DNA of 64,000 nucleotides from Octopus bimaculoides (GCF_001194135.2 NC_068985.1:104689533-104753532); one strand, 5' to 3'. Shown: positions 1,326 through 54,394, counted from the stretch's first letter. The notes: generated by a model from the letters alone, not told the origin. Program-made: numbers and translations.

Positions 1326-1742
1326 GTCAGTATGCACTGCAAATGTATGCCAAGAACGACCCAAATGACAACGAATTCTCCAATATTTGCAATTACATGT
1401 TGAGATGCAACGAGGGCCTGGGTGTTGTATACCCTTACCCATCGGTGACAAACGACAAAGTTGGATCAATGGGAAAGTTCCATTCGTTAGGTCTCCACTT
1501 TGTCGAAGATGCCCCTGGATATCAAAGAATCTCCACTACTGGCCAGTGTTCTTTTCAAATTAAAATCCCAGCCAATATTGATTACTTCAGTAAGCTTATT
1601 CACCAATCAGAGAACACTTTGAATGACGTTTCTGATTATACATACTGTTATCGAGATGGAGATATCGTAAGCTTTGCCATAAGATGTTCGTTGCCTGGAT
1701 TTTACCGCTTTGATCTATTCGCCAAACTTAACACAGAGGACG
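1326..1742 (+). CDS. KY/hillarin/LTD-1-like protein, internal exon (Ig-like repeat modules)
   Basis: Acceptor ttcag|gt (phase 1), donor acg|gtatgt (phase 1). GQYALQMYAK...FSNICNYMLRC and FAIRCSLPGFYRFDLFAK match the repeated G-x-Y-x-L-x-[IL]-[YF]-A module C-terminal to the transglutaminase-like core of KY/hillarin proteins. Confidence 0.75.
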
Positions 1743-2112
1743 GTATGTAGGAAATTATTATTATTATTATTATTGTTATTATTATTATCAATATAAAGGC
1801 AGTAAGCTGGCAGAATCGTTAGCATGCTGGGCAAAATGCTTAGCGGCATTTCGTCCATCTTAAAGACGTTCTGATTTCAAATTCTGAGGTCAAAATTTAC
1901 TGCCAAAAAAATGCCAAGACAACTTTGGAGGACCGAAAATTCCATGTGAAATGCAGCTGTATTAGAAAAGAAATTGACAATATTTGAACGTTTACATTAT
2001 ATACCACATTGACATGTATGCTAGAAAGTTTGGTAATATTTCTACAGCCAGCTTTTGAAAGCCTTTTTCTCTTAACTAATCTTCATGTTTTCCACTCTCT
2101 TTTACTTTCTCT

Positions 2113-2460
2113 TTTACTTGTTTCAGTCATTTGACTGTGGCCATGCTGGAGCACCACCTTTAGTCGAGTAAATCGACCCCAGGACTTATTCTTTGGAAGC
2201 CTAGTACTTATTTTATCGGTCTTTTTTGCCGAACCGCTAAGTTACGGGGACAAACACATACACACACACACACATACATAGATATATACATATATACGAC
2301 GGGCTTTTTTCAGTTTCCGTCTACTAAATCCACTCACAAGGATTTGGTCGGCCCGAGGCTATAGTAGAAGACACTTGCCCAAGGTGCCACGCTGTGGGAC
2401 TGAACCCGGAACCATGTGGCTGGTAAGCAAGCTACTTAGCACACAGCCACTCCTATGCCA
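2113..2460 (-). mobile_element. CORE-type tRNA SINE, near full length
   Basis: Head ggagtggctgtgtgctaagtagc...ggttccgggttcagtccc on the minus strand; same family as 17706. Confidence 0.85.
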
Positions 2461-2648
2461 CTCTTGACTAATTTTTTCCTTTTTCCACTCATGACTAATT
2501 TTTTTTTACTTTTTCCATCTCAACTTATTCTCTGCTGGACTATTTTTACTATTTTACTTTGTACATTTTTACTGCTGGACTATTTTTGCATTTTCTGCTA
2601 CTGACTAATTTTTACATTTCCACCCTTAACATTTTCTGCTTTCCACAG

Positions 2649-2989
2649 GTGGCTACCCAAAAGTATTCTGTTCAGTTCTTGAAACTTTTTGGCCAATGGC
2701 TGAATGTTTACCATACCCACAGAAATACTCAGCTTGTAAGGATACATACAATATCCTTTCACCATCTGTGAATCAACTAGCAGAAGGTCAGAATATAAAA
2801 ATGGCCATCGTCGTTCCAAATGCTGAATCTGTTGCTACAATCGAAGACCAAAGCTGGACATACTTAGAGAAAGGTGAAAAAGACAAATGGACTGGAACCA
2901 TTGTTCCAAAAGCTTCTGGGAATATCATTTCCATAGCTGCCCGACAGTCCAGTGCTGTACGCTCCTTTGAGGCATTAGTCTCCTTTGAG
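2649..2989 (+). CDS. KY/hillarin-like protein, internal exon
   Basis: Acceptor ttccacag|gt phase 1 continues the previous exon (GYPKVFCSVL...WTYLEKGEKDKWTGTI...ALVSFE); donor gag|gtaaca phase 0. Confidence 0.75.
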
Positions 2990-3080
2990 GTAACATTTTC
3001 CCTCTGTTTATTTGGTTGATGTGATTAAGTGGAAATAATGACTTCGCTCTTCCTTTCCCTGTTCTTTTACTATCTTGCAG

Positions 3081-3101
3081 GCTATTAGACAATCTTACTA
3101 A
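3081..3101 (+). CDS. Candidate alternative terminal exon (AIRQSY*) of the KY-like gene
   Basis: Strong pyrimidine tract ttcgctcttcctttccctgttcttttactatcttgcag 91 nt after the 2989 donor; phase 0 reaches TAA after 6 codons; AATAAA at 3697. Confidence 0.35.
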   Translation, partial: AIRQSY

Positions 3102-3938
3102 TGCTAGTGCCCCACCATCACTTAAAAGTACACTCTGTAAAGTGGTGTTAAGAAGGACATCCAGCCAGAGAAACCAGGCCAAAGTTAATATTGAATCTTG
3201 ACGTAGCCTTATAACTCATGGGTTCCTGTCAAACTGTCCAAGCCAAGCCAGCATGGGAAATGGACATTAGTGGCAATGATTTATCTATTTATCATATATT
3301 TTCTGAAGAATGGTGTGATTGGTTATAGATTTTCAACTGGCCAATTACTGACCCTTAGATTTCCAATAACAAAAGTGACAAGTGCGACATCTGTACAACT
3401 CAGATGGAGTAAATACTGTAAGATATTTTTGCTCAATGCACTAACTTACGACTTTTCGCATTATATATTTTACCACTTTGACTATATTTTCACCAATGTC
3501 TTGTAGGTAGGTGGAAACTAATCATGAGAGAGAGGAGAGTGTGTGTGTGTATGTATGTGTGTGTGTGTGTATGTTTAAGTTACCAGCAATCAGTTATTTT
3601 CAATTATTTCAAAACTGTAACTTACTGGTTCAACAAATAGATTTTGATAAAACAAATACCAAATTAAAACAAGTATTGATGTTTCTGATACAGTTAAATA
3701 AAAACCCATGAAAGTGGCACCAGAGCCTGGCTGCAATCTGCTGACTGAATTTCAATGCCAAGGTATTAACTCAAACTTCTTACAAATCACTTGTCCCTCA
3801 TGCTGTGCAAGGGTATTGAACACAGCCACGTCTGTGTCTATAGTGATTACTCATATATTAAACATAGATAATACAGAATAAAATACATTTTTTTTTTTTT
3901 TGTGTTTATGTACTTCTTTCTCTTCTATTTCTCTACAG

Positions 3939-4973
3939 GTTGTTCCAGCTCATGTTTTGAGAGAGGAGTTCCGCAAGCAAAGAGCGTCTCGTGAGAATGC
4001 TGAACAGGAGTATTTAGAGCATATCTCTCGCAAAAAACACCTGCAAAGCATGCGCAAAGATCGGTCAATGATTCATATGATTCAACGAATGGCAAAGATG
4101 AAATTACAGAATTTAAATGAGGATCACTTGAAGCTGATGGATCAGCAGTTGGATAATGATGCTATTCTGCAACTGGACCAATGCTTGCCTGAAGTCCCAC
4201 AACATTTAACGCAAAATGGTACTGAAAACACTGTTGAGAGAGATGTAGCATATGGTGATGTGTTAGAGAATCACAATTATGAAAGAAATGGAAATGATGC
4301 CCTTGTTGATTTTCTCAGTGAAGTCAATGACAGGCAGTTAAATAAAGCAATACTTGACAATGGACCTGTCAATGGAAATGAAAATGACGATTATAATCTA
4401 GGCATGTCACCGTTAAAAATGAGACCATCCATCAAAAAGCGAACACTTCCCAAAATTGACATAAATTTAAATGAGCTTGATGGTGTTAATGATAGTGATG
4501 ATGACAGTGATGAAGACTATGAGAACAATGCCGGCAATCACTCGGAGTATAATCTTGATTTTGATAAACATGGTGTCAGACTGACGCCTATTTCAGAAAA
4601 AGAAGAAGAAATTGATGATTTCTTTAAAAGCACTCTAACTCAGAACCAGAATGGTCCTGAGTCTGATGAATCTGAAGAAAGTGTTGACAATGTGAGAGAG
4701 GCAGTAGAAGAGATAATAGGAGCAGAGACTGTTGAACGGGTAAACGCCTATCCATCTTTGGATGACAGCGAAGACAGTTTAGTCGAAAGACTATCAGAAC
4801 TACGAGGGAAAGAAGTAAACCCAAAAGTTCCCTTGAGAGTGAAAAGAAACCTGGAAGAAAAAGTAAAAGAGGAGGAGATTATTGTAAGAGAAGAGCCAAA
4901 GAAACAAGAGGATCTTACAGAGAAACTGCTCCAACAAGTAGCTTCTATTGAAAGAACAATTGAAGAAGATGAG
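3939..4973 (+). CDS. KY-like protein, 345-codon charged helical plus acidic low-complexity exon
   Basis: Acceptor ctctacag|gtt phase 0, donor gag|gtactt phase 0; stop-free, E/D/N-rich. Confidence 0.8.
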
Positions 4974-5017
4974 GTACTTGTACCTTTTGATTTTATCTTA
5001 TTCTTTTCTAACCTATG

Positions 5018-5055
<38 letters not shown>

Positions 5056-5057
5056 TC

Positions 5058-5268
5058 TTTTACTTTATTACTTGTTTCAGTCATTTGACTGCGGCCATGC
5101 TGGAGCACCACCTTTTATTCGAGCAAATCGACCCCAGGACTTATTCTTTGGAAACCTAGTACTTATTCTATTGGTCTCTTTTGCCGAACCGCTAAGTTAC
5201 GGGGACGTAAACACACCAGCATCGGTTGTCAAGCGATGCTGGGGCAACAAACACAGACACACAAACAT

Positions 5269-5299
<31 letters not shown>

Positions 5300-5404
5300 C
5301 ACATATACGACGGGCTTCTTTCAGTTTCCTTCTACCAAATCCACTCACAAAGCTTTGGTTGGCCCAAGGCTATAGTAGAAGACACTTGCCCAAGGCGCCA
5401 CGCA
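5058..5404 (-). mobile_element. CORE-type tRNA SINE, 5'-truncated
   Basis: Very similar to the 2113 and 17706 copies, CpGs retained. Confidence 0.85.
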
Positions 5405-5954
5405 ATATATGTATATATATTGTGATTCCTATAACGCATTTAAGGCTTTACCATTTACTTGTTTTGGTCACAAATATTCATATGCATGCATACACAAATA
5501 TTCATATGCATGCATACACACTCATGCCGGTGCCACATGAAGGCGCTTAGGCAGTGCCATGTAAAAACCACCCAGCACACTCCGTAAAGTGGTTGGCATT
5601 AAGAAGAGCATACAACCATGCCAGATCAGACAGGAGTTTGGTGCAGCTCTCCTGCTTGCCAGCCCCGGTCAAACTGTCCAACCCATGCCAGCAAGGACAA
5701 CAGACGTTAAATGACGATAACTCACTCACTCTCTCTCTCGCATTCATTCGCCAAGTTTTTCATTTTCTGTCTACTAAATTCAGTCACAAAGACCAATATA
5801 TATTATTTACAACTATATTTACATTAGTAAAAAGATATCTTCAAATTCTCGAATGCTTTAAAATAGTCCTAAAACCATTATGTATACATACATATATATA
5901 GAATTTTATTAAATTTATTAAATTGCAAATGTTGAATTTTAATTCTCTCTACAG

Positions 5955-5991
5955 ATGGCAATTCAAAATTTCCACCTTGGAGCAGCATCAG
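5955..5991 (+). CDS. KY-like protein, 37-nt exon (MAIQNFHLGAAS)
   Basis: ttctctctacag|atg...tcag|gtaaga; phase 0 in and phase 1 out, bridging the 4973 donor and the 7803 acceptor. Confidence 0.65.
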
Positions 5992-7491
5992 GTAAGATAA
6001 ATCCAATAATCCTTTCTCACCCATATTTTAGAAACAAACATCTGGCTTATTTGAATCTGTCTCATTATATATATTATTGATAATCATTTGTTTAGCAGAG
6101 TCATTAGATCATTAGGAAAAATGGTTTGCAGTATTCACTCTTATTAAGCAACTATATACCTGCTTTTGCTCACACCTCTATTGTACCAAACAAGTTCTGA
6201 AATTGATGGAACTGACAAACCTTCTTCCACCAAAATTTCTAACCTTGTCCATAAATCTGAAAACCATTCTTATTAATCCCTACCATATCAAGCACAATTG
6301 AGCAGATTTATGATCAAAAGCATTCCAGACATGACCATCCCGTTTTTTATTTATTTATTCATTCATTCACATTTTTTTCATCAAGCACATAACTAAATGT
6401 AGATATTGTCTGTTAAAAATAATCTTTATTTCTGTTCTGTGCTCTGCCATACATTGGTTTGTCCTTGGACAGTTTTAGTACCATATTAGTTTACTTATGC
6501 TAAGAGGTGGCTAACCCCTCATTTACCCCTTCTCCCATTTCTGGAAGAAGGAATGCTGTGAATGGTTCCCTCGTGACCTTTTTCACAAGGCAATGCAGCC
6601 AATTCAAGGAGAGAAGTACCAACCGCAGTAAATGACTGGTATTTCGTTGACCCTAAAAGGATGAAAGCCGAAGTTGACGTTGGCAGTATTTGAACTCAGA
6701 GCACAGAAAGGTGACATGAGTACGAAGATGTAATCTATCTGATCCACCAACCACTTTAACAATTCAATGGTCACACATACACCTCTATTTTGGTGAGTGG
6801 TATTTTTTTAAATGGTATGATTTTGATAGAATCTCAAATTGCTTCCTGTATACACAAGCAACATTCTACTTTTGCCCCAACAAAACATTTGCCAGATGCA
6901 AATGGAGTTAGTTTTGGCAACTCTAGATATCCTACAATATGTGACAGTTTATCAATGAATATGTAGAACAGGACAGACTTAAAATATAATGAAGAAAGAC
7001 CAAGATGGTGGTCATGGTGTTCAACTTGTTGAGAGCAGATGATGCCAGACTTATGATGATGGTGATTAAAATATGTTAGAAATTGTTGTAAAGTATGGCT
7101 TCTGTTCATCATCATCATCATTTAACATCCATTGTCTATGCTGGCATGGATTGGACAGTTTGACCAAGGCTACACCAGACTCCAGTCTGATTTGGCATGG
7201 TTCCTATGGCTGGATGTCCTTAACGTCAACCATTTCAAGAATGTAATGGGTGCTTTTACATGCCACTAGTATCCACCATAACTATGGTTTCACTTGACTT
7301 GATAGGTTTTCTTCTCAAGCATGACATATTGCCAAAGGTCTTGGTCATTTGTCATTGCCCAACATTTATTCAGTAAATTAAAATAAACTCCTCCAGTTCT
7401 GTATCTGCAAAACCATTAAACAACTGAGATAATAACAGTATGTTAATGATAGAAACAGTTCACCAGAAGATGATCAAAGAATGGGCAGATT

Positions 7492-7712
7492 TTAACCTTT
7501 TATCATTCAGGTGAATCTGTCAAGTGTAATGCTTATTTTATCACAATGTTTTGAATTCATCATGCATTATCTTGTTGCTTTGAGATTTTACTGATGTGGC
7601 TGTTTAGTTTTAGAGGTAAGATAGGTGTGAAAGGCCCAGTTTGGTGAGTTGCAACATAAGACATGTAGAATGTTTGGGCCAGATATGGTCAGTTTAAATG
7701 CTAAAAGATTAA
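7492..7712. mobile_element. TTAA-flanked piggyBac-like MITE, family A
   Basis: ttaa-ccttttatcatt ... aatgctaaaaga-ttaa; a second copy is at 44351-44574. Confidence 0.6.
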
Positions 7713-7802
7713 AGTAGTGTAAATAGTTATAAACATTAAGTTATGGCTAAATAATGAAATCCAAGTAGCTCAAATTGTTATTTCTCTCTTTTGTGTTTCC
7801 AG

Positions 7803-8044
7803 CCCCAAAAGACGATCAATCCTTTCTCCGGCATCGAACAACAGCAACATTGTCAAATTATTCCACACCAAATTTACCAGACAAAGAGAAGTCTCACACA
7901 GCACCAGTATCAGTGCAAACTCAAACAGACAATGAAGAAGTCTCACTCACAGTGGTTTTGGAGAACTTCATTTATGTTTTTGCGATTTTTAGTCTCTTAT
8001 GGAAACTTGCAGGACTATTAAGTTTTGAACATACAAGCAGCTAG
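7803..8044 (+). CDS. KY-like protein, terminal exon with hydrophobic C-terminal segment
   Basis: Acceptor ttgtgtttccag|cc phase 1; APKDDQ...VVLENFIYVFAIFSLLWKLAGLLSFEHTSS*. Confidence 0.65.
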
Positions 8045-11000
8045 AAGTCAAGACTTATACACGTTTTCTAAGTATGCACATGAAGACCTTTAGAAAGTCG
8101 GAATTCAGGATCTAATTTGAATGGTCTGTTGATAGATATCTGCAGAAGATAAGGAAATAGTAACAAACTACTTGGCTGACCAAAAGATTGAGATTCAAAT
8201 GATTTACTAAGTATAATTAATAATATATTGATATCGTTCATTTTTTTTTTTAATCCTTGCTCCCTTCCAATTCCTGTCTATTATATTTCATTGTTGGTTT
8301 AGTAATTATGTTAAAATTTCACTTATAAAATCTGACACTTAATGGTTTCCACACTTCCAGTTATTTTTATATCACTTCACTTTCATCACCAAGCCCTTCA
8401 ATGTATAAATATCATACATTGTCATTTCCCTTTTGTCTCTGAAGCTGAAATTGTGTCTAGGGAAGAAACTCATAACTTAGTTTTGTAGTAAGTTAAGCTA
8501 CAAGTATATGGGAAAAAAAAAATGGAAGTTATTGCGACAATCACTTGTGATACTGTTGTTTCATCTTTTTTCATTATTACTTTGCTTATAAAACAATTTC
8601 GAAGTAGAAAAGTGTTGATTCCCTTATCTAAAATATGCTTTTTCAGATACTGAAAGAGTTCACATTCATCAGACACAATGAAATCTTGTATTTACATTTG
8701 ATTCCTTGGTTAAAAGAGTAAAACCTACTTTTTGAGAATCATAAATGATGTGTATCTTCTAATTACAATTTTCTTTCTTTTTTTTTGGTTACTTTTACAG
8801 GTAAAATTCTAATCATCTAATTGTTATTCACAAATCAGTACAGCAATGTAATATTTCTGCTTTTGTTTGTTTTTTTGTAACCTTTTTCATGAGCTGTAAT
8901 AATAATGTGCTTGTATTCCTTTATTAACATAAAATTTATTCATTTTATAATTTCAACCAAGTGCCAAGAAATCAAAATAATTTTATAATTTAGAAATTTA
9001 TTTATAACTAGATTTTATAGCAAATATTTTTCCTTTACAGAACCCATGTTAGCATGGAAAGCGGACGTTAAACTTTAAAAAGTATATGTCATATATCTTA
9101 ATTTATGTCAGTTCAAGTTAATTTTCTTCCAGAATTTTGATTTTGACAGTATTTTAAACCTCTTGTCAAAAGGTGGTGTAAATCTGATAATGTTTGGACA
9201 GATCATAACATGCCAACTGTAAAAACCCTGTATAGGATACATGATGTCACTAAAAAAAGGATTAAAGAAATACATTTGTGACACTGTTATTAAAAATAAT
9301 CCCAGTTTGGGGCTGGGGTACAAATGTTTGTTTATCTTTCCTCAAATTAATCATTACATTAAAAATTATCACCTAAATTGTATAACCGTGTAATAATTTT
9401 TTGCAGTAAATAACAATTCCACACTCTGTCCTCTTTCGTACTGTGTTATTATTTCAATATGTTGGTGATATTTTGTTTGGTAGTTGCAGAAGTGAGAGGT
9501 ACTCAGTTTAGTCTTGTAGTAAACATATATATTGACTTGTTTCAGTCATTAGGCTGTGGCCATACTGGTGCACAGTCTTGAGGAATTTTAATCGGATGAA
9601 TCGATCCTTGTATTTAAATTTTTAAAAACTGGTACTCATTCTGTCTCTTGCCAAACTGCTAAGTTACAGAGACCTACATTGCAACATCAGTTGTCCAGTA
9701 GTGGTAGGAGACAGACACAAAGGAACACACACAGGTAAATAAAAATGAAAATCAAAAGGATGTATGCAATGAATATTGAAGATGGAAAAAGGAGGGGGCA
9801 TGGCTCTTTGTCAGAAAGACAAAAGGGCTGGAGAGAAGGAAAAATAGTCCAGAAGTACGTGTATGGTTATATATATACGCACAACGGACTTTTTTCAGTT
9901 TCTGGCTACCGAATCTACGCAGAGGTTTTAGTTGGACCAAGACTATAATAGAAGACGCCCAAGGTACCACACAGTGGAACAGAACATGGAATCATGTGAG
10001 AAGAGATTATCAAAGGAGTATGAAGCTCAATGTATTTGAGCTTGCAAAGCATATCCTAGGATGTTCAGAAAGAGAGAAACTAATAATGAAAGACGGGCAA
10101 TGTATGGATGCCTTTGAGATTTTGAATGTCATAAGTGAATAATTTACTGGTGTGAGTTGGACACTATCACAAGGCTTAGGCAATGAATGAATCCAAAGTT
10201 TGACAAGGTGTTAAACTGTGAAAATACCTCTCAAAATGGATTAATCATTGAGTTCTTAATCGACAAAACTAATTAATTTGGTAGTAATTTGACGATTAAG
10301 TGTTTTAGCGATGTACCTTTTATATATAGTGACTCGTTGCAAATTGTGGGTACCTCGCCTGGCCGGCCGGCCGCACGCTATGGATTTCATCTCTCACAAC
10401 TCGCTATCGTTTATGTCCCCTTTCGAACCTCTAGACACGTACAATTTCCTAGCTCGTTACATTTAAGTATGCTTAAGCATCCACTCATTTTACGATAGTT
10501 AAATCCGCTTTACTCGCGCAAAGTGATACAAGAAAGACAACTCTTCAGTACACATTCCTGTATACAAGATAGAAGGTTGTATATTGCAGATTGGCTCCCA
10601 TACGCCACATGGCTGAAAAACTATGACGTTAAATTTCTCAGCCAAACGGTACCGTAACAAAATATTTTTTTTTAAATTGTGAAATTTTAAGTTTTAAATG
10701 AAGGTATGTAGCCTTGTGATTAGAGTGTTCACGATCATTAGATTGTAGGTTCAATCCTTGGGCCCGATGCCGCGTTATTTCATTGTGAAAGGTACTTCAT
10801 TTCACGTTGCTCCTGTCTACTCAGCGAAAACAGATGCTGGTGCAATTCTCACTCATCTTTCACATTCTGGATGTTCTACTAGATTAAGCGTGCGAGGTCT
10901 GATAGCGTGTCTGTGTCTGCTCATTACTCCGTACATACCTAAAACAATTAGCAGGAGCGTCGTTCAAGTTACCAGATTATTTATACACACTAGTGAGTGA

Positions 11001-11314
11001 CGGCCAAGAAATTCATGGTTGAAAGAAATAGCTTTGGTGATGGGGTTGAAATTAGCTGAGAGTTGATCTATTTTACTGTTGTCCTTTCCAATATTTTAAG
11101 TCAAAATCAATCTTTATAAATTAAGATTTTCAAGGTGGGTAAAAATTTTGGATCTTTTTTAAAACGGGGGCCACATTTTTCATTAACGAAACACTTTGAA
11201 ACTTGGAACACTGGTAGAACGTGTCATATAAAACATCTTTTTCTCTTAGTCTTCTTTTAAAAAAAAGAAATCCATAAATTATTCCATGTTAAAGTTGTCG
11301 TATTTCTGTAATTT

Positions 11315-12185
11315 NNNNNNNNNNNNNNNNNNNNNNNNNNNNNNNNNNNNNNNNNNNNNNNNNNNNNNNNNNNNNNNNNNNNNNNNNNNNNNNNNNNNNN
11401 NNNNNNNNNNNNNNNNNNNNNNNNNNNNNNNNNNNNNNNNNNNNNNNNNNNNNNNNNNNNNNNNNNNNNNNNNNNNNNNNNNNNNNNNNNNNNNNNNNNN
11501 NNNNNNNNNNNNNNNNNNNNNNNNNNNNNNNNNNNNNNNNNNNNNNNNNNNNNNNNNNNNNNNNNNNNNNNNNNNNNNNNNNNNNNNNNNNNNNNNNNNN
11601 NNNNNNNNNNNNNNNNNNNNNNNNNNNNNNNNNNNNNNNNNNNNNNNNNNNNNNNNNNNNNNNNNNNNNNNNNNNNNNNNNNNNNNNNNNNNNNNNNNNN
11701 NNNNNNNNNNNNNNNNNNNNNNNNNNNNNNNNNNNNNNNNNNNNNNNNNNNNNNNNNNNNNNNNNNNNNNNNNNNNNNNNNNNNNNNNNNNNNNNNNNNN
11801 NNNNNNNNNNNNNNNNNNNNNNNNNNNNNNNNNNNNNNNNNNNNNNNNNNNNNNNNNNNNNNNNNNNNNNNNNNNNNNNNNNNNNNNNNNNNNNNNNNNN
11901 NNNNNNNNNNNNNNNNNNNNNNNNNNNNNNNNNNNNNNNNNNNNNNNNNNNNNNNNNNNNNNNNNNNNNNNNNNNNNNNNNNNNNNNNNNNNNNNNNNNN
12001 NNNNNNNNNNNNNNNNNNNNNNNNNNNNNNNNNNNNNNNNNNNNNNNNNNNNNNNNNNNNNNNNNNNNNNNNNNNNNNNNNNNNNNNNNNNNNNNNNNNN
12101 NNNNNNNNNNNNNNNNNNNNNNNNNNNNNNNNNNNNNNNNNNNNNNNNNNNNNNNNNNNNNNNNNNNNNNNNNNNNNNNNNNNNN
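11315..12185. other. Assembly gap (others: 13360-13840, 27459-27468, 27922-28424, 31422-31937, 42414-42448, 55674-56170, 56911-57181, 57531-57540)
   Basis: Runs of N, mostly next to microsatellites or poly(A). Confidence 1.
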
Positions 12186-12300
12186 ATGGCCTTCGGCATT
12201 CTGTATTTGTCTATACGTGAGACGTGGTTCGCCCATCTGAGCTCTCTCAGCAGCAACATGGTTTCAACGTACGTCAAATGTAGTACAACCAAGTAGTTGC
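12186..12300 (-). mobile_element. RTE LINE RT C-terminal fragment next to a gap
   Basis: LRELRWANHVSRIDKYRMPKA matches the RTE LRWAGHV.RM...R.PK motif. Confidence 0.65.
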
Positions 12301-13840
12301 CTCCCTTGGGAAGGGAGATAACTATCAAACAGTGCTGGGAAATTTTAATATTGGTTTCAAATTTTGGCACAAGGCCAGCAGGCTTAAGCTGGAAGCTAAG
12401 TTGATAATATCGACCCCAAAAGGATGAGAGACAAAGTAGACCTTAGCGGAATTAGAATTCAGAATGTAAAGGGGAAAATTTTAATATCAATTAATCAGCT
12501 TTTAGTGCTGCTTGCATGATATAAGCTTTCACACCAACGGATACGATTTGTCTAGTTGTCGTCCAACTAAATTAATAGAAGAACTATGATATTAGAATAA
12601 TATTGTTTCCCGTCCTCACTGAATAATTATTAATATTTTTATGCAGGAAACATTAAAATATTAGCTATTAACACTCTGCCCAGCACCATTCGGTAACTTC
12701 ACATTCCAAAATCAGCAGTCAAATCCCCATTTATTCTGAAATCATTTTCTGCTATATTAAGAGGGATACGTGGGTTCAAAAGTCCCACGACAGTCCTGGA
12801 CTCTATCTATTCAAAGTCTTTTTAACCCAATATTTACACGCTATTATTTATAGCTTTATGTGTTTCGAGATACTTCGTTCTAAAAAAAAAATTCATATTC
12901 TCTTAAAGTTTACATAGAAATTCTTATATCATGTATATATAAGAAGACATCCATACAAATAAACAAAAGAAAAATGTAATACAATGTATTTCAAAGATTG
13001 ATATTAGTGTACAAAACTGTTTATTTAAACAAAAATAATTGCCATCTCATCGGAGCAGAAACGAGATGAACAGAGCATTCCTTAACAAAACTTAAGTGTT
13101 TATTTCGGGATTTCTTTCCCCACACACTATATATTCGTTCTATTGGCGTAGCTAGAGTGTGTGCCGCCCGGGACGGCCTTTTATCTTCCCTCCCCTCCCC
13201 CCTCCGCACAAAAAAATACAGCAGATCCTAAAGTGGTACCGCTCAGAGCGGACTTCCCCCTCTAAGATGCTCTTTGGTATGCGATATACGTAGCCAACGT
13301 GATCTACAAGAGCCAAATTCCACTTTAGTATGCGATCTACACGTTTTATTTGTTTATTANNNNNNNNNNNNNNNNNNNNNNNNNNNNNNNNNNNNNNNNN
13401 NNNNNNNNNNNNNNNNNNNNNNNNNNNNNNNNNNNNNNNNNNNNNNNNNNNNNNNNNNNNNNNNNNNNNNNNNNNNNNNNNNNNNNNNNNNNNNNNNNNN
13501 NNNNNNNNNNNNNNNNNNNNNNNNNNNNNNNNNNNNNNNNNNNNNNNNNNNNNNNNNNNNNNNNNNNNNNNNNNNNNNNNNNNNNNNNNNNNNNNNNNNN
13601 NNNNNNNNNNNNNNNNNNNNNNNNNNNNNNNNNNNNNNNNNNNNNNNNNNNNNNNNNNNNNNNNNNNNNNNNNNNNNNNNNNNNNNNNNNNNNNNNNNNN
13701 NNNNNNNNNNNNNNNNNNNNNNNNNNNNNNNNNNNNNNNNNNNNNNNNNNNNNNNNNNNNNNNNNNNNNNNNNNNNNNNNNNNNNNNNNNNNNNNNNNNN
13801 NNNNNNNNNNNNNNNNNNNNNNNNNNNNNNNNNNNNNNNN

Positions 13841-13877
<37 letters not shown>

Positions 13878-14010
13878 GTGTTTGTTTGGCCATCCTGAAT
13901 TATATGTTTCAACCCACAATTTAATTTCACATCAGGAATCTTGCTAAACAAATATATAAGCGTAAGTTTGATAAACAATTATTCCAAAATATTTTGATGC
14001 TTTGGGGATG

Positions 14011-14299
14011 GGTCATTATGTCCATAATAGTCACATGCACTGACGCAATTTCATTTCTTTATTATTATTCAGTTGGTTAGCTGTTTAACCAACTAACTAG
14101 TCAATTGTTTGATTAATCAGTTGTTTGCCCAAGTTTATTCGTCGCCATTCGCGACATCTTCGATGACCATACCCTCTCAGCTTAATTGAATGATTAATAA
14201 AACGATCGACTAGTTAGTTGGTTAAATAGCTAACCAATTGACGAATAATAAAGAAGTGAAATAGAGTCAGTACGCGTGTTCATTATTGGAGTAATAACC
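14011..14299. repeat. Imperfect long inverted repeat (MITE-like foldback)
   Basis: 14011-14118 is the reverse complement of 14190-14299 with scattered mismatches (core ttggttagct.tttaaccaactaactagtc). Confidence 0.75.
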
Positions 14300-14616
14300 G
14301 TCCTGAGGTGTAGCAAAATTTGTCTCTACACATAAGTTTACATCAAGAATTTTGCAAACCAAATACAAAAACGTAATATTCCAAAAAACAAAATAAATTC
14401 ACTCTTAAAATCATAATTTATCATCCGATTATTTTGTTCAAACTCAAAGAATATTAAGAGAAAATACCATATATTTTGTAGGCTGAAAAAAAAGACACCG
14501 TCATAGAGAATCAAACAAAAATAAACTGTTTATCTATTCCGATAAACTTTAAAGTCATTAAGTTGCTTTCCCTCTTCTTTGTTACCTAACTAAAGCAGCT
14601 AGTTTGGATTGGGGTG

Positions 14617-17600
14617 TTATATAAAAGAAAAGTTTTCTTCACGATCACAAGATGTCGCTAACGTAGTGTGACTGTAATCAGTCAGATTGTCGCATAATGT
14701 ATTGTTATTCGCATCACTGAAGTGGTTTTCATTCAGTGACGCATGACAGCCAACATCATCCTTTTTTACTGGAGTTTTGGACATTTCAGTAATCAACAAT
14801 TTTTCTGCTATGTTTCCGTTATTGTTCCAGTTTGAATGTACTTCGGGAATTTTTAAGAAATTCCTTCTGTTTTGAAAGGTACTTTCTTTATCTTGACAAT
14901 TGTTGGATTGAGAAGTAGCATACATTGATTTCTTTTCAAGTGAAATCGAATATTTTGGAAAATTATACTCACTGTAGATATTTTTTGATCTAGACTTCGG
15001 CTGACATCTTAAATCTTCCTTTATTGTGCTGGATTTTGAAAAGCAGATATCAGCCGGTTGATATCTCTTACTCAGATGTTTTTTCAATGGAGAAGCCGAT
15101 ACTGGTGTAGTGTGTTCTTTCAGTTGAAATTTATCAGAATCTTTTCCCTTTTGTTTAGATTCCCAATTTTCACAAATACGTTGCTCTAAACTATAACCAT
15201 CATTTGTATCAAGAACTAAACAATTGTTTTCATTAAAGTAAGACATTCCAGTGGAGTTTGAACCTGCTTGAATCAAAACTGGGTTGTTTTCATTTTCTTT
15301 CTGATTGTTAAGTTGGTTTTCATCCCTGAAGTCTAAAGTGTTGGGATATTTATCAAATGGAATGTCTGAAATTAAACCACATTTTTGTTTATTATCAAAA
15401 ATATTTGATGATTCTAATCTATTTTTGGTGCAAGAATAATGACCCCGATACCGGGAGTTAGTCGATTCCATTTTGAGTGGCTCAAATGCAGCAACAGTGT
15501 TCATAGATTTGAAAGCATTAAAGTTGTCCATACCTAAGCTTTCACTTACTGGACTATTAACACTTTTGTCGGGAAGACCTATTTTCTCTTGACTAGAAAT
15601 ATTACAATTAATATCCATGCGAGTTGGTTTGGTTTTATATGCTTCGTTTCCGTCATTAAAGCGAGAGAAACCATTGCTGCCAGCCACTGAAAAAATACTA
15701 TCGTTCTTGTTTTTTTGCAACAACAATGGGTTATAATAATTTGTATTCTTTCCGGTCTGTAAAAGTTGTCTCTCACAGAAACTGGAAACTTTGGGTGGTT
15801 CGAATTGATACGGAGAAGATGGAACTAAGTTTGGTCTATTTTTATAGAAAGGAATAAAGTCCAGACCAGTTTCACAACCTTGGGATGAGACTGAAAGATT
15901 TCTTTTATCTGGACCTGAAAAAGTATATGTCTCGGCTTTCGAAAACCTGTTGTTCTTGACATTTGCTGAAGTTAATTCGACATCTCTGTTCTCTCTCGGA
16001 GGAGCAGTTTTTGATCGATCGTTATCGCCTGTTATTGGGACTAAATGTTGTTTCATGTGGTCATGAAGCGGTTTATCTGTAGAAAAGTGCGCCGAACAAT
16101 TAATACACTTCATTTCATGAGATTTTATATGTTTTTTGAAAACATTTAGATTATGGAAAACTTCTCCGCATATTTCACACAAACGGATAGAACTGGATGA
16201 AACAGCATGAGAATTATCTCTGGTTTGTAATATCGAGTGGTCTTTCTCGTGGTCAAAATAACCGTCTGGACTCGTAAAAACTTCGTGGCAGACTTTACAA
16301 TGAAATGGCGGCTTACCAAAATGACTGTCCATGTGGGAATTAAAGTTGCAAGCGCTCATGAAAACTTTCCTGCAATATTTACACTGATAAAGCAAATTTG
16401 AGTGATGTTGAATTTTATATTCATTCGAGTAAAATTCAGAATAAGATGCTGGAATCTCGTAATGGTCCATTTCATGAAGATTCCGTTCTGGTACATTTTG
16501 ACAAATAGCTGAGCAAAAACTACATTGGTTAAACGTATTTGGTTTTAAATTCATCTCACTATACCCGTTAGTCTTGGGTTCACCATTTATGCAACTGAGG
16601 GCTGGGATATGTTCCGAGCTTGTTTCTAAATTTGTTTCGTCTGGATCCTCTTCTAATGATTCAAAATCTGATTTCAAAGTACAGTTTTCTGCATGAATCG
16701 GTAAGTGCATTTTCAACGTTGTGAAAGATAAAAAAATTTGGGAGCAAAAAGGACATTGCTTGGAGTTGTTTCTCTCTTTTAGCAAGGCCGACTTCAAGGA
16801 CATTCCTTCTGATTTAGCAATCACATCTTTATTTTCACAAGTTGCCTCGTGTTTCTTTAGCAGATAACGACTTCTGAAGATTACATCACAAAACCCACAG
16901 TGAAGTTGCTCCATTGAATGGGAGATTAAATGTATTGCAAGCTGGTTCCGCTTGAACCATACACCACAGCGTTCACATTCTATCACGGAACTACCCGTTC
17001 GACCTAATCTCTTAAGCGAGCGATGGGGACTTTGTAAAAGGACTTTTGCCTTCAACTTTATCAGTATCTTTTTGTAATGGACACTTCTGAAATTACATTT
17101 GACACAAGTGGAGTGTTCTGGAAAGTGACTTCTTAAATGTGCTACCGTGAAATTTTCATCAGCTTTAATATTTTTATAACAGAAAGGGCACCGACAATAA
17201 TTTGAACAAGAATCGACTTTAAATAACTTCATAAGTTTATCAATATTATTTGAACAGCTTTCGCATTTAGGGAGATGCAGAATATCTTTTTTATGACTCT
17301 CCAGGTGCCTCTGAAGATGCAAACCAATAATAAATGTTTTAGAACAGTAATCACATACGTAGGGAGCTTGTTTGCTATGAATTCGTAAATGAACCAACAA
17401 GTAAGAAATATGAGAGAAATCTTTCTGACATATCTTGCATTGGAATAGTTTAATATTTCGATTGTGTTTTAAAAAGTCAACCATACTGGCTGAAAGGCAA
17501 ATCTTCTGCAAAATATCCCCGCATTTTCGGCCATTATATTTGGACGGAACGTTTCTGTGTTTCATGAAAGATATGAAAGTTCGAAATTTCTCATCGCACC

Positions 17601-17634
17601 GATTACATTTGAAACTCAACGAAGTCCTTTCGAT
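14617..17634 (-). CDS. C2H2 zinc-finger protein, main exon (about 1005 codons, roughly 11-13 fingers plus an N/S-rich tail)
   Basis: Stop-free ORF with fingers such as CKICQKDFSHISYLLVHLRIH, CDYCSKTFIIGLHLQRHLESH and CKYCRKVFMSACNFNSHMDSH; the ORF-track start is TTG, and an acceptor ttttccag|atc (phase 0) lies at 17634. Confidence 0.9.
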   Translation of the reverse strand: MERTSLSFKCNRCDEKFRTFISFMKHRNVPSKYNGRKCGDILQKICLSASMVDFLKHNRNIKLFQCKICQKDFSHISYLLVHLRIHSKQAPYVCDYCSKTFIIGLHLQRHLESHKKDILHLPKCESCSNNIDKLMKLFKVDSCSNYCRCPFCYKNIKADENFTVAHLRSHFPEHSTCVKCNFRSVHYKKILIKLKAKVLLQSPHRSLKRLGRTGSSVIECERCGVWFKRNQLAIHLISHSMEQLHCGFCDVIFRSRYLLKKHEATCENKDVIAKSEGMSLKSALLKERNNSKQCPFCSQIFLSFTTLKMHLPIHAENCTLKSDFESLEEDPDETNLETSSEHIPALSCINGEPKTNGYSEMNLKPNTFNQCSFCSAICQNVPERNLHEMDHYEIPASYSEFYSNEYKIQHHSNLLYQCKYCRKVFMSACNFNSHMDSHFGKPPFHCKVCHEVFTSPDGYFDHEKDHSILQTRDNSHAVSSSSIRLCEICGEVFHNLNVFKKHIKSHEMKCINCSAHFSTDKPLHDHMKQHLVPITGDNDRSKTAPPRENRDVELTSANVKNNRFSKAETYTFSGPDKRNLSVSSQGCETGLDFIPFYKNRPNLVPSSPYQFEPPKVSSFCERQLLQTGKNTNYYNPLLLQKNKNDSIFSVAGSNGFSRFNDGNEAYKTKPTRMDINCNISSQEKIGLPDKSVNSPVSESLGMDNFNAFKSMNTVAAFEPLKMESTNSRYRGHYSCTKNRLESSNIFDNKQKCGLISDIPFDKYPNTLDFRDENQLNNQKENENNPVLIQAGSNSTGMSYFNENNCLVLDTNDGYSLEQRICENWESKQKGKDSDKFQLKEHTTPVSASPLKKHLSKRYQPADICFSKSSTIKEDLRCQPKSRSKNIYSEYNFPKYSISLEKKSMYATSQSNNCQDKESTFQNRRNFLKIPEVHSNWNNNGNIAEKLLITEMSKTPVKKDDVGCHASLNENHFSDANNNTLCDNLTDYSHTTLATSCDREENFSFI

Positions 17635-17705
17635 CTGGAAAACAATTACATCTTTAAGAAAATTCAAAAATAACTATTCCTACTCAGCAATCATTTTAAA
17701 ACAAT

Positions 17706-17864
17706 TGGGAGTGGCTATGTGGTAAGTAGCTTGCTTACGAACTACACGGTTCCAGGTTCAGTCCCACTGCATGGCACCTTGGGCAAGCGTCTTCTATTAT
17801 AGCCTCGGGCCGACCAAAGCCTTGTGAGTGGATTTGGTAGACAGAAACTGAAAGAAGCCCGTCG

Positions 17865-17901
<37 letters not shown>

Positions 17902-18100
17902 TTGTGTGTGTGTCCCACCCCCAACATCGCTTGACAGCCGATGCTGGTGTTTACGTCCCCGTAAACTAGCGGTTCGGCACAAGAGACCGATAGAATAAGC
18001 ACTAGACTTACAAAGAATAAGTCCTAGGGTTGATTTGTTCAACTAAAGGCGGTGCTCCAGCATGGCCACAGTCAAATGACTGAAACAAGTAAAAGAGTAA
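17706..18100 (+). mobile_element. CORE-type tRNA SINE, full length, antisense in the zinc-finger intron
   Basis: A-box-like tggctatgtggt, B-box ggttcagtccc, ccttgggcaag core and an aaacaagtaaaagag tail. Confidence 0.85.
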
Positions 18101-18107
18101 ATGAGTA

Positions 18108-18655
18108 CCGTATTTGCTGAAGTATAAGATGCACTCTCAATTAAGATGCATTTCTATTTTACTATGACATTTTTTTTTTAATAAAACAAATTTAATAGGT
18201 TTCATCATACGCTTATTAAAAGATATACTGGCGTGGTTTTTGTGGGGAAAGACATATAATTTTACACATGTAATTTCAATATTGCGTCATACTGGAATAA
18301 AGTATGAAATTTTAAATTTATCATAAACTCAGTTATAGGAGTACCGTAACCCATGGTTATCTTCTCTCAGATCAACTGTATTGTTATTTATATTTTATTC
18401 AAGAGAATTGCCATGAAGTATTGTAAAACTCGTATTTCTGATTGTGACGTATTACCGTGATTGCCACTAGGGTGGTGCATTGCCACTATGATTTGGTTGT
18501 CATTCACTCATTGCAAATAAAAGTTTAACTTCCTTTCATTTCTTTAGGATAATTTTCCATTTAGATCATATACAAGTGTTTCTTAAAGGTAACACAGTCA
18601 TTAAATAAAATATCAGGTATGGATTATGTATTCTGGAGAAGGTACAGAAATACGG
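18108..18655. mobile_element. Possible TA-flanked pogo/Tigger-like MITE
   Basis: ta-ccgtattt at the left end and aaatacgg-ta at the right end; only about 10 bp of matching TIR. Confidence 0.3.
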
Positions 18656-18889
18656 TATGACCTCCGCACATAACTGCCGTTGGCTCGTTTTCAATATTTT
18701 ATTAAAAGTAGAGCGGCGAGCCGACAGAAATGTTAGCACGCCAGGCGAAATGCTCGACTTTGCCTTCATCTTTTCGGGGTCGATAAATTAAGTACCAGTT
18801 GCGTACTGAGGTTGATCTAATCGACTAGCTCCCTACCCAAAAATTTCGCGCCTTGTGCCTAGAGGAGAAAAGAATATTTTATTAAAAGT

Positions 18890-19100
18890 AGGGCGGCGTG
18901 CTGGCAGAATCGTTAGCACGCCGGGCGAAATGCTTAGCAGTATTTCGTCTGCCGTTACGTTCCGAGTTCAAATTCCGCCGAAGTCGATTTTATCTTTCAT
19001 CCTTTCGGGGTCGATTAAATAAGTACCAGTAATGCACTGGGATCGATATGTAATCGACTTAATCCCTTTGTCTGTCCTCGTTTATCCCCTCTGTGTTTAG
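18890..19100 (+). mobile_element. Nin/Deu-domain tRNA SINE
   Basis: gctggcagaatcgttagc head and tttcatcctttcggggtcgat-aa-taagtaccag Nin-like core; more than 10 copies in the window. Confidence 0.75.
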
Positions 19101-19719
19101 TAATTCTCATAAGGCATTTAATCAAAAGTTTTACTTTATTCTATCAAATATAATATTTCTTTACGGAGAGGGGGAGTTTCCAGCGCTTTCCTAAAATGAT
19201 ATTATGGCAAATAACCTTGCAATGAAGAACAAGAAAGAATATCGGTATGGAGGAACAGTTTCTCTACAGCGCGTGCAATTCAAACAACTTACGTAAGTTA
19301 ATAATCTTTTCTACTATAGGCACAAGGCCGAAATTTGAGGGAGCGGGTAAGTCGATTACATTGGGATATTTTCAATTTGACGGCCAGATTTTTTAATTAA
19401 ACACTTTGAAACTTCGGATACTGGTAGAATGTGTCACATAGTACAGGGTTTACTCTTAACGTTTTTGACAATTTTGTATTTTAGAAGTTATTTCGTATTG
19501 AAGTTGTAGTATTTGAGTAATTTTAACCAATCAATGACGTGTATTCAGCTGAAGAAAATTACTGCTGCTGTTTGCGAACAACTTCCAGGTCCACTCCCCT
19601 AACAAAACCCTTCTTTAATAACCAGAGATGTTTTTATAGCAACATAGGTTTGCCGTATCAGGGTTGATTTGAGGCTAAATAACACCAAAATTATTGTGAG
19701 AAAGACCAATGACGGAGCT

Positions 19720-19875
19720 TTACATTGACCCCAGTACTCAACTGGTACTTATTTTATCGACACCGAAAGGATGAAAGGCAAAGTCGACTTTGGCGGAATT
19801 TGAACTCAGAACGTGAAGACACGAAATCCCGCTAAGCATTTCGCCCGGCGTACTAACAATTCTGCCAGCACGTCA
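19720..19875 (-). mobile_element. Nin/Deu-domain tRNA SINE
   Basis: Reverse complement closely matches 18895-19030. Confidence 0.75.
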
Positions 19876-20094
19876 CCTTTATGGCAGTTTAGCGAGATGA
19901 CAAGGGTGTTAGTTTCCTTGATTTTCTGGAACATGGCTGTACCACGAACAGCGAATGATACATTGATACACTTAAAAAGCTTAGAGAAGCTTTTAGGAAG
20001 AAGAGACCGAACAAGAATCTGAAAACGATCTACATTCACCATGATAGTGACCACACACACACACATCCTTGACAACAAATCAATCCATCGGAAA

Positions 20095-26300: not shown

Positions 26301-26654
26301 ATATATTATTGAATATGTTACATCTCTGTAACTTGTATTTTTATCATCTGGATTATGAAAGTATACTAGTGAAATGTTCCTATGAAGACCTCAATGAAAT
26401 GCAAATATAACAGGTCAAACACAATGATTTGAGACAGAGTAAAAAAATTGTACAATACAATAGAAATCAGTTGCCCAGAAAAGATTATTAATATAAGGTG
26501 AGAAAGAAAGAAAAAGAAAACATCTGATGAGAAATATGCAGTTACTCTACCAAGACAATAGCTTCCGATTTACACCTATAACACTATGCAACGTAATTTT
26601 TGTCCTTGGATAGCAAATGTTACTTCTTATTTGCTTACCTCTAGAAAGTATGAA

Positions 26655-26980
26655 AAATGGTTATTTCCTTCAAACTTTGCTTTCATTGCATTTATTCAAA
26701 CCCCAAAGAATCCCTTTCAAAACATGGCTGTGATGCTTCCCCACTACTTCTGCTCGTGATCAAAGATGCACATACTGTCAACCACTAAGGGACATGCTCA
26801 AGTTGTTATGGTCAAGCGACTGACAAGCAGATTTGTGGTTCTGAGCAGAATATTTGCTATAACGATATTTCTGCCTCAGCAACTCAGTGTTGAATCTATT
26901 GGAAATGTAATGGAAAGTAAGTCAGTTTTGAAACAGTTATCTCCAAGTCACAAAAGTACAGTTTGGAGGGAATAGTTGTC
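26655..26980. mobile_element. Possible MITE with degenerate TIRs
   Basis: ttatttccttcaaactttgcttt versus the reverse complement of aaaagtacagtttggagggaatag. Confidence 0.35.
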
Positions 26981-27402
26981 ATTTCCTTTGATTTCTACAT
27001 AGAAGCAAATTGGAAATAACACTTACTGACCAGGTCAGGGGAAAAAAAAAAAAAAAATTGTTATACAGTTTAATTATTAGGGTGGTTGGATCTGTAACAA
27101 ACTGCTTCAGTACCAATTTTCAGGAGCTAGCCTGCACAAAAAAAAAAAACATAAAGGACGCTGTTAATTAGAAAATTACACCTACTGGCTATTAAAATAA
27201 GTGTGAAAATATGTAAAACATGCCAGAAGCTTAGCATATAATAAGTGTATATACAGACACATGTGGACATGCAGATATATGTATATGTAAATGTGTATAA
27301 GTGTAAAACATACAGATCTACAGATGCAATGTCATCTATACTTGCATATTAGTATACATATATCCATATACATATGTGTGTATGTGAATATGGGGTTGGG
27401 TA

Positions 27403-27458: not shown

Positions 27459-28424
27459 NNNNNNNNNNAAATCTAAAATTTGTAGTTTGCTTTACAAAGC
27501 TCATGTACGGATATTGGCTAACAAATACTATTTATACAGCAAGGTTGATCATATCATTGCTTAGATATTTGGAATTTTGTAATATTTGTTGAATTACTAC
27601 TGGTGAATTGATATTGAAATATGCAAGTTATTCAATCCATTTTTTATTATTCATATATATATATATATATATGCTGTGCGTGAGAAGACTCAGCAAGCCA
27701 AGTGAGATCATAACCCGTGGCCTTTGCCAGGGGTGTAGCCAGCCTACTTATGCATACCTTTCCTTCATTGGACACATATAGGTACACATGTACAAATACC
27801 TAGTTGATATTCTCCAAATTCTAAAAAGGCCTTGTCGCTGAGTTAGATCCTGGCTCTCCATCCTTTGCTGAGAAATTTGAAAAATAAACTAGTACACCTA
27901 CACACATCATGATATATATATNNNNNNNNNNNNNNNNNNNNNNNNNNNNNNNNNNNNNNNNNNNNNNNNNNNNNNNNNNNNNNNNNNNNNNNNNNNNNNN
28001 NNNNNNNNNNNNNNNNNNNNNNNNNNNNNNNNNNNNNNNNNNNNNNNNNNNNNNNNNNNNNNNNNNNNNNNNNNNNNNNNNNNNNNNNNNNNNNNNNNNN
28101 NNNNNNNNNNNNNNNNNNNNNNNNNNNNNNNNNNNNNNNNNNNNNNNNNNNNNNNNNNNNNNNNNNNNNNNNNNNNNNNNNNNNNNNNNNNNNNNNNNNN
28201 NNNNNNNNNNNNNNNNNNNNNNNNNNNNNNNNNNNNNNNNNNNNNNNNNNNNNNNNNNNNNNNNNNNNNNNNNNNNNNNNNNNNNNNNNNNNNNNNNNNN
28301 NNNNNNNNNNNNNNNNNNNNNNNNNNNNNNNNNNNNNNNNNNNNNNNNNNNNNNNNNNNNNNNNNNNNNNNNNNNNNNNNNNNNNNNNNNNNNNNNNNNN
28401 NNNNNNNNNNNNNNNNNNNNNNNN

Positions 28425-28464
<40 letters not shown>

Positions 28465-29890: not shown

Positions 29891-29931
<41 letters not shown>

Positions 29932-30178
29932 AAGACAAAAATCGTTTCTATGTGATTTTTGTGCAGTACCCAATTCAAGACCCCGATTCATTGCTGAGGA
30001 CCTTTTCTCACATTCTGTAAATGTCTCTTTAAATCATATTCATACTCATCAATTACCAATCATTTTCCCCCTCTTACAAAATTATCTGTAATCAACCAAC
30101 TAACTTTAAAAAATACTGACAAGAGATGAATTTAAAATATATTCATGTGTATATATACACACTCTTAGGTGTGTGCAT

Positions 30179-30251
<73 letters not shown>

Positions 30252-30401
30252 TACATATATATATATACAAGATAGTTACAGATATGTATTTATAATTTAG
30301 AAAGAATAATAAAATTTTCCCTTAGTATTTAAGTCCAAGTTAAAACCCAGATTTTCAACAAATCTTAGATACCTGTTGAAAGAAACAAAACCCATCACAG
30401 A

Positions 30402-30439
<38 letters not shown>

Positions 30440-51892: not shown

Positions 51893-52180
51893 TTAACCCC
51901 GAGAGGACATCTCCTCTAGCTGGTTAACGATGCACAGCTGCATCCGATAAAATCGCGAGCAGCGGAGCAAACCCCTACCATCTCCTAGCAACGGGACAAG
52001 TAGACCAGTCCTGGTTTCAGGCTATTTCTGCCACTCCTCAGTACTGGACACCTCGTCTGCCAAAGATGACTACTGGACCCATCACTAGGAGATGGCAGGG
52101 GTTCACACCCCTGCTCCCAGTTTTATCGGATGAAGCTGGGCATCGTTAACCAGCTAAAGGAGATGTCCTCTTGGGGTTAA
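51893..52180. mobile_element. GC-rich foldback MITE with about 100-bp TIRs and TTAA ends
   Basis: ttaa-cccc ... gggg-ttaa; 15 mismatches over the first 96 paired positions by hand count. Confidence 0.8.
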
Positions 52181-53761: not shown

Positions 53762-53789
<28 letters not shown>

Positions 53790-53792
<3 letters not shown>

Positions 53793-53986
53793 CAAATGAA
53801 ACAAATGTGTGTGTGTGTATGTATGTGTATGAGTGAGTGTGTGTGTGTGTGTGTGTGTATGTATATATATATATATATATATATAGAGATAGATAGATAG
53901 ATAGGTAGGTAGGTAGGTAGGTAGATAGATAGATAGATATATGAGAATAAAGGAGTGTACATGTTTGCATGAGTGAATGAAACAAA

Positions 53987-54040
<54 letters not shown>

Positions 54041-54125: not shown

Positions 54126-54164
<39 letters not shown>

Positions 54165-54328: not shown

Positions 54329-54394
<66 letters not shown>

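Follow-up and report, generated by a model that had tools for sequence, protein, structure and literature searches.

Hillarin of leeches and insects belongs to the same broad superfamily as KY, in which a transglutaminase-like region is combined with KY-type immunoglobulin-like (Ig-like) domains, and the relatives of KY are not known to be membrane proteins. Vertebrate KY itself is reported to be associated with the cytoskeleton or the Z-disc, with filamin C and IGFN1 as partners (for example PMC6078408 and PMC7584501). For an unrelated protein, SLMAP (sarcolemmal membrane-associated protein), the choice between two tail anchors, TA1 and TA2, sets the target organelle (PMC2712456). Here, we describe a locus that touches on both subjects: LOC106881314 of Octopus bimaculoides, the 3' part of which lies on the given strand (+) of a 64,000-nucleotide stretch of chromosomal DNA (NC_068985.1:104689533-104753532), called the window below. 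We consider it probable that this KY-like gene constitutively makes a long product with a tail-anchor-like end, that a splice acceptor at position 3081 is a decoy, and that a further acceptor at 8801 is used only in combination with an internal donor at 7952.

Window positions 1326-8044 (+) contain the last five coding exons of LOC106881314; the DNA record CM046605.1, an O. bimaculoides chromosome, equals the window without mismatch over the 18,044-base overlap that was checked. The product, XP_052823843.1 (also XP_014787144.1 and UniRef A0A0L8FTV7; P0002 in our collection), is 1180 residues long and carries the annotation name 'KY-like immunoglobulin-like domain-containing protein'. The exon at 1326-1742 (+), in phase 1 at both ends, encodes part of the third KY-type Ig-like domain and gives a Pfam Ig-like_KY match; its translation equals residues ~491-630 of P0002, and its splice sites are conserved in Octopus sinensis. 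The exon at 2649-2989 (+) closes the last Ig-like domain with ...ALVSFE and ends in phase 0 at the donor GTAACA at 2990. It is also present in L001, the O. sinensis locus (26513-26853), and in L002 (run SRR11869391), which comes from a third octopus and has 89% amino acid identity. The large exon at 3939-4973 (+) begins with a charged coiled coil and continues into an acidic, poorly conserved linker; its first ~70 residues can be aligned with KY-like relatives, the octopus paralogue P0007 among them, its splice sites are conserved, and its ratio of non-synonymous to synonymous substitution rates (dN/dS) is 0.41 versus O. sinensis. A micro-exon of 37 nucleotides (5955-5991, +) contributes MAIQNFHLGAAS, ends in phase 1 and is included in the reference protein. 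O. sinensis has the identical splice sites, and the peptide aligns with LALKHFSY of decapodiform transcripts. The last coding exon (7803-8044, +), again with conserved splice sites, contains the TAG stop codon at 8042-8044, so that the chain 3939-4973, 5955-5991 and 7803-8044 translates to an end ...VVLENFIYVFAIFSLLWKLAGLLSFEHTSS followed by the stop (equivalent to ...DNEEVSLTVVLENFIYVFAIFSLLWKLAGLLSFEHTSS).

Joining 2989 to 3939, 4973 to 5955 and 5991 to 7803 reproduces the annotated O. bimaculoides protein exactly. Independent pipelines have annotated the same long protein for O. sinensis (XP_036358837-9) and for Octopus vulgaris (CAI9723252), and the five exons are conserved, splice sites included, in the O. 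sinensis locus (L001); NCBI gives one protein each for O. bimaculoides and O. sinensis, the latter from three transcripts. These agreements show the exon path to be that of the constitutive product. An initial annotation of the window had named this path together with several alternative ends, and its coordinates, splice motifs and peptides are all present in the sequence. It had treated the long, tail-anchored path as one arm of an isoform switch, however; the path exists, but as the reference product, conserved across coleoid cephalopods, and not as an alternative form.

The assignment of the gene as KY-like is upheld by Pfam: P0002 contains three stretches of KY-type Ig-like domains (PF23265, E = 1.8e-63) and no other Pfam family, with two of the three stretches encoded within the window (E = 2.8e-18). 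The label 'transglutaminase-like', which had been attached to it, is weak. The relevant region of P0002 can be aligned with relatives that score above the Pfam cut-off (P0007, 27 bits; P0011, 72 bits) and that carry Transglut_core ahead of their Ig-like domains, but Transglut_core (PF01841) has no match in P0002 itself even at E <= 10. At the positions that we provisionally take to be those of the catalytic triad, assigned from the core motif, the alignment has Arg for Cys (KGRYD) and Asn for His (RNIWNAV), with Asp kept (LIDVHW). Because Arg and Asn occupy the expected positions of the catalytic Cys and His, the transglutaminase-like core is probably degenerate, with its catalytic residues lost, and the protein a non-catalytic KY-like scaffold. 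Read from the amino-terminus, the degenerate core would be followed by the three Ig-like domains of KY type and then by a short coiled coil with many charges, which leads into ~330 residues of acidic, disordered linker; a hydrophobic helix of ~20 residues, located 5 residues from the C-terminus, closes the protein.

With vertebrate KY and invertebrate KY-like proteins, the octopus protein shares the three PF23265 domains following a homologue of the transglutaminase-like core, and its best relatives are annotated as 'kyphoscoliosis peptidase' or 'kyphoscoliosis peptidase-like'. It differs from the family in the undetected Transglut_core and the replacement of the presumed catalytic Cys and His, and also in a C-terminal extension of ~430 residues that ends in the hydrophobic helix. 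Of the 150 best KY-like representatives that do not belong to the orthologue group, none has such a helical tail, nor does any of the fish KY proteins retrieved; in the closest octopus paralogue (P0007/XP_052825369.1, 40% identity), a charged coiled coil forms the C-terminus. Unlike hillarin, the octopus protein has no LIM or other hillarin-type N-terminal domain (LIM/W180) detectable by Pfam; one gastropod relative, P0197, does have a LIM domain (PF00412). Octopods and decapodiform cephalopods both possess this KY-like paralogue.

The hydrophobic C-terminal helix, FIYVFAIFSLLWKLAGLLSF, is encoded by positions 7967-8026 (+) and corresponds to residues 1156-1175 of 1180; it is a predicted tail anchor, followed by 5 residues and the TAG codon. 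In a hydropathy scan, no other part of the protein resembles a transmembrane helix; the Kyte-Doolittle 19-mer mean here is 1.9-2.2. Considered for membrane integration, the Kyte-Doolittle means are 1.74-2.16, above the classic threshold of 1.6. The runner-up 19-mer reaches 1.17 and is located within folded domains, while the N-terminus is hydrophilic, with no signal peptide seen by hydropathy scan only. The mean hydrophobicity of the helix is 1.13-1.22 and its hydrophobic moment 0.05-0.29, a high mean and a low moment that agree better with a helix crossing the membrane than with one lying on a surface. AlphaFold2, run with no alignment, predicts a single helix over the last 31 residues (predicted local distance difference test, pLDDT, 90-96), preceded by a disordered stretch. 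A tail-anchor-like segment at the C-terminus of the long product had been proposed beforehand, and the hydropathy, the moment and the AlphaFold2 helix all bear this out. An amphipathic in-plane helix was also considered; the low hydrophobic moment led to its rejection.

A tail-anchored topology, in which the KY-like module would be cytosolic, fits the position and length of the helix as well as the lack of a signal peptide and the length of the disordered spacer. As the sole hydrophobic segment, situated at the extreme C-terminus, the helix would leave the ribosome only at termination; with no signal peptide present either, its insertion would have to follow translation, in the manner of a tail anchor. 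The KY-like module would then be in the cytosol, held on a long flexible tether. For octopuses, the target would most likely be a membrane of endoplasmic reticulum type, because no basic residues follow the helix and its flanks are not basic. The decapodiform end, RLLSWRPY, may also be compatible with mitochondrial or peroxisomal targeting.

Decapodiform orthologues were brought up by the third protein query, the full-length P0001. A query with the 689 residues encoded in the window yielded only the Octopus cluster, the word-indexed search missing the clear relatives P0119, P0183 and P0184; the 79 residues of the last exon as a query yielded nothing, even though a 31-residue exact match exists in P0001, and such blanks were not taken as evidence. 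The full-length decapodiform orthologues fall into two clusters (41-42% identity, 99% coverage) and are intron-less contigs of 3.7-5.6 kb, assembled from RNA-type sequencing runs (Logan). One cluster includes a Sepia (Acanthosepion) pharaonis protein and the other is from a second decapodiform. All full-length members (9 of 9) close with an acidic run and then EEV.LIKFVEYF[IV]Y.I.LLS.L....RLLSWRPY, which aligns residue for residue with octopus EEVSLTVVLENFIYVFAIFSLLWKLAG-LLSF (EEVSLTVVLENFIYVFAIFSLLWKLAGLLSF). The micro-exon and an upstream LR[HQ]R motif can also be aligned between octopus and decapodiforms, and the acidic linker from the coiled coil to the tail barely so (24-27% identity, with many gaps).

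Between O. bimaculoides and O. sinensis, identity is ~85-97% everywhere, and this measure cannot separate untranslated region from intron; synonymous and non-synonymous counts were used for this reason. In the helix codons, the two species differ by four synonymous changes, one conservative change (Val to Ile) and one in-frame codon insertion or deletion, a synonymous/non-synonymous contrast with a Fisher p of 0.004, on small numbers. By these comparisons the tail is old: it predates the split between octopods and decapodiforms and is under purifying selection.

Among the sequences collected, P0119, P0142, P0207, P0211, P0213 and P0217 were rejected as isoforms, being open reading frames (ORFs) that read through from exon into intron, and P0212 was rejected as the product of a frameshifted contig. 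A separate observation concerns a 145 kb contig from a metagenome assembly (L003; ENA ERZ21867824, contig ctg115356l), which holds only the upstream exons of a decapodiform-type orthologue and, because of these exons, is taken to be cephalopod host DNA. The gene calls on this contig read through TGA, suggesting a bacterial, code-4-style caller.

The initial annotation had also proposed a short soluble isoform, ending in a terminal exon at 3081-3101 (+; cttgcag/GCT) that encodes AIRQSY and a stop. In its general form, the proposal is that of a regulated switch, with a short form made through 3081 and intronic polyadenylation, and/or forms that skip exon 7803 and end at 8647 or 8801, existing beside the long form. 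The acceptors have the frames and stops described for them, and when the 383 AG sites in 2991-9500 were ranked with a crude weight matrix, 3081 and 8801 came 3rd and 4th, just after the true acceptors 3939 and 7803. Against this, both the 3081 acceptor and its peptide are absent from the other two octopuses: at the equivalent position, O. sinensis has a 16-bp deletion, the sequence CAAG and a completely different downstream frame, and L002 has GTGAAG and no longer contains the stop. Among the annotated proteins of three Octopus species and the decapodiform contigs, no AIRQSY-type end is found, and ends right after ...SFE are restricted to unspliced read-through ORFs. The AATAAA at 3697 is uninformative, since this hexamer occurs at a chance density of 1.55 per kb on the strand. 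The region after 3100 is repeat-derived, with a dispersed-repeat fragment at 3129-3270, of which the window contains six other copies (68-80% identity), adjoining the 3081 exon downstream. In relatives, including the nearest octopus paralogue, the last Ig-like domain is likewise followed by a charged helix, so that an extension beyond this domain is ancestral. We judge the 3081 acceptor, which no annotated or assembled protein uses, to be a species-specific decoy in an intron, and the short soluble isoform to be unsupported.

Further downstream, positions 8045-9260 (+) form the probable 3' untranslated region (3'UTR) of the main transcript, a single-copy stretch for which the end has been placed by inference. 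Neither AATAAA nor ATTAAA occurs from the stop (8044) to 9261, and decapodiform transcripts extend for 1.5-1.8 kb after their stop; for both reasons the acceptors at 8647 and 8801 most likely lie within the 3'UTR. Similarity between the 3'UTRs of octopus and decapodiform transcripts was not found. The candidate acceptor at 8647 (8647-8680, +) would give the phase 1 tail DTERVHIHQTQ; it is ranked 32nd of the 383 AG sites and is unsupported. The acceptor at 8801 (8801-8812, +), ttttacag/GTA AAA TTC TAA, is identical in O. sinensis and can be read as GKILII in phase 1 or as VKF in phase 0, each followed by a stop. Ends of the DTERVH or GKILII type are present in none of the annotated isoforms of the three species and in none of the decapodiform contigs.

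One annotated protein does appear to make use of 8801. The O. vulgaris isoform CAI9723251.1 (P0003) ends in ...EEISLTVKF, without the hydrophobic helix; two other forms, P0004 and P0005, keep the tail. The end of P0003 is explained if an internal GT donor at 7952-7953 (+; ACA/GTGGTT, or ACA/GTGATT in O. sinensis), which lies four codons ahead of the helix, is spliced in phase 0 to 8801, so that exactly the hydrophobic helix is excised. The junction from 7952 to 8801 was rebuilt on both O. sinensis and O. bimaculoides DNA, and no site other than 8801 can supply the VKF end, whether in the 10 kb that follow in O. sinensis or at window positions 7951-20000. In the O. vulgaris annotation, PASA supplied the alternative forms on the basis of aligned Iso-Seq and RNA-seq data (PMC10700109); as such additions rest on transcript alignments, CAI9723251.1 should reflect a transcript. 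A tail-less form is absent from the O. bimaculoides and O. sinensis annotations and from the decapodiform contigs. The acceptor at 8801 would consequently be a real one only when paired with the internal donor at 7952, as in the O. vulgaris isoform, and the resulting product would be soluble. O. vulgaris also has two alternative first exons, with N-termini MRLRTLMFYRIE... and MTPFFYLLCKAPKN... (P0003/P0004 versus P0005), one of which belongs to the tail-less isoform.

The suggestion that exon 7803 is skipped in favour of 8647 or 8801 in phase 1 is unsupported, the evidence for 8801 pointing to phase 0 and the donor at 7952 only. With its short arm absent from related octopuses and its AIRQSY, DTERVH and GKILII tails in no annotated isoform or decapodiform contig, the regulated switch as first formulated is very improbable. 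The underlying idea of a toggle for membrane tethering fares better, in that a splice form that removes the helix is annotated in O. vulgaris, but its junction is different from those proposed and the species is a sister species.

The gene may instead have a single constitutive isoform, with removal of the tail in vivo never reaching a meaningful level, and the ...SLTVKF model of O. vulgaris would then be an artefact of annotation or mere splicing noise; we rate this at somewhat below an even chance. It agrees with the single NCBI protein in each of O. bimaculoides and O. sinensis, with the tail being present in all nine full-length decapodiform contigs and with the weakness of the internal donor. 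It does not account as easily for a canonical GT..AG junction at 7952 and 8801 using a conserved, fourth-best acceptor, for the location of this junction four codons ahead of the helix with a stop 9 nucleotides past it, or for the transcript alignments required for isoforms in the O. vulgaris annotation. The more far-reaching proposal, that a lineage-specific coleoid KY-like pseudoenzyme has been tethered by a tail anchor to an organelle membrane since before the octopod/decapodiform split and that octopuses regulate the tether by splicing 7952 to 8801, producing a membrane-bound and a soluble pool of one scaffold protein, is tentative, and we would sooner doubt it than accept it.

Returning to the tail-anchor-like constitutive product with its decoy acceptor at 3081 and its paired sites at 7952 and 8801, several points weigh against it. 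The use of 3081, 8647 and 8801 in O. bimaculoides has been judged from genome and annotation. The donor at 7952 is weak in this species (GTGGTT), ranking 150th of 417 GT sites, and the tail-less O. vulgaris isoform is known here as an annotation model, which also differs in its first exon. As for the helix, an equally hydrophobic 19-mer closes 4.8% of the stop-free segments of at least 30 residues in the window; because of this chance level, the case for a function of the tail is based on its conservation and not on the hydrophobic run itself. The helix codons are 50% T. Membrane insertion would be borderline, with one basic residue inside the helix and a Hessa sum of -0.6 to +2.6 kcal/mol overall (a simple, position-independent sum on the Hessa scale, -0.6 to +1.1 for octopus and +1.6 to +2.6 kcal/mol for decapodiforms). 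The family is also without precedent for this, none of the 150 representatives mentioned above having such a tail.

The borderline sums, those of the decapodiforms in particular, would also agree with a conserved hydrophobic C-terminus that is no anchor but a protein-protein contact helix (for example for oligomerisation or for packing against the Ig-like domains) or a quality-control or degradation signal. What is conserved is a specific sequence (E.F[IV]Y, S[LI]L, LLS[FW]), beyond what a generic anchor needs, and no relatives of KY are known to be membrane proteins. The length and position of the helix are those of a tail anchor, however, and its low hydrophobic moment goes together with a high mean hydrophobicity; furthermore, the ~330 disordered residues that part it from the folded region fit a tether better than an intramolecular contact. 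We regard a contact helix or degradation signal as unlikely, and an anchor-like role as the better description of the tail.

Around the gene, the window contains an uninterrupted ORF of 1016 amino acids at 14617-17667 (-), encoding a multi-C2H2 zinc-finger protein. It is arranged tail-to-tail with the KY-like gene, ~6.6 kb downstream, and is its neighbour in O. sinensis and O. vulgaris as well. Copies of an element resembling a short interspersed nuclear element (SINE), with the core ...tttcagtcatttgactgcggccatgctggagcaccacc... and (CA)n/(TA)n flanks, are located at 91-520, 2097-2459 and 5056-5404. Many more copies exist in the O. sinensis locus, one of them, specific to that species, directly after the equivalent of the 2989 donor (L001, ~26885-27335). 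The G+C content is 19-27% in 10000-14000 and 28000-32000, where simple-sequence ORFs are open in several frames on both strands. A (TAGA)n/12-mer microsatellite occupies 54041-54279, inside a zone of strong positive GC skew at 52000-60000 (up to +0.33). Rfam has no match within the window.

The practical result is modest, as the sequence was already publicly annotated and the short isoform is unsupported. What the locus offers is a KY-like protein with an architecture that is not described for the family, whereas splice control of anchors is an already known theme; in the literature searched, no link between KY and tail anchoring was found. The KY family is treated as one of soluble scaffolds associated with the cytoskeleton, and a conserved tail-anchored member, if true, would be its first form to be tethered to a membrane. 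Such a member would suggest that, in cephalopod cells, the binding partner of the KY-like module is linked to an organelle membrane.

The proposal that transmembrane segments can arise from thymine-rich sequence (PMC7005711) has a counterpart here in the T-rich non-coding DNA, which often yields runs resembling transmembrane segments (the 4.8% level given above, and the intron read-through ORFs P0119 and P0142); the octopus tail differs in that it is not young. With SLMAP and other proteins with spliced anchors, the octopus protein shares a long coiled-coil or disordered cytosolic part and a C-terminal anchor, here a putative one, encoded in alternatively spliced 3' sequence. The sequences are unrelated, and SLMAP chooses between two anchors, whereas the octopus case, known here from sequence and annotation, would concern the presence or absence of one anchor, decided by an internal 5' splice site and seen in the annotation of one species. 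It would constitute a simple case in which one internal splice suffices to remove a transmembrane segment.

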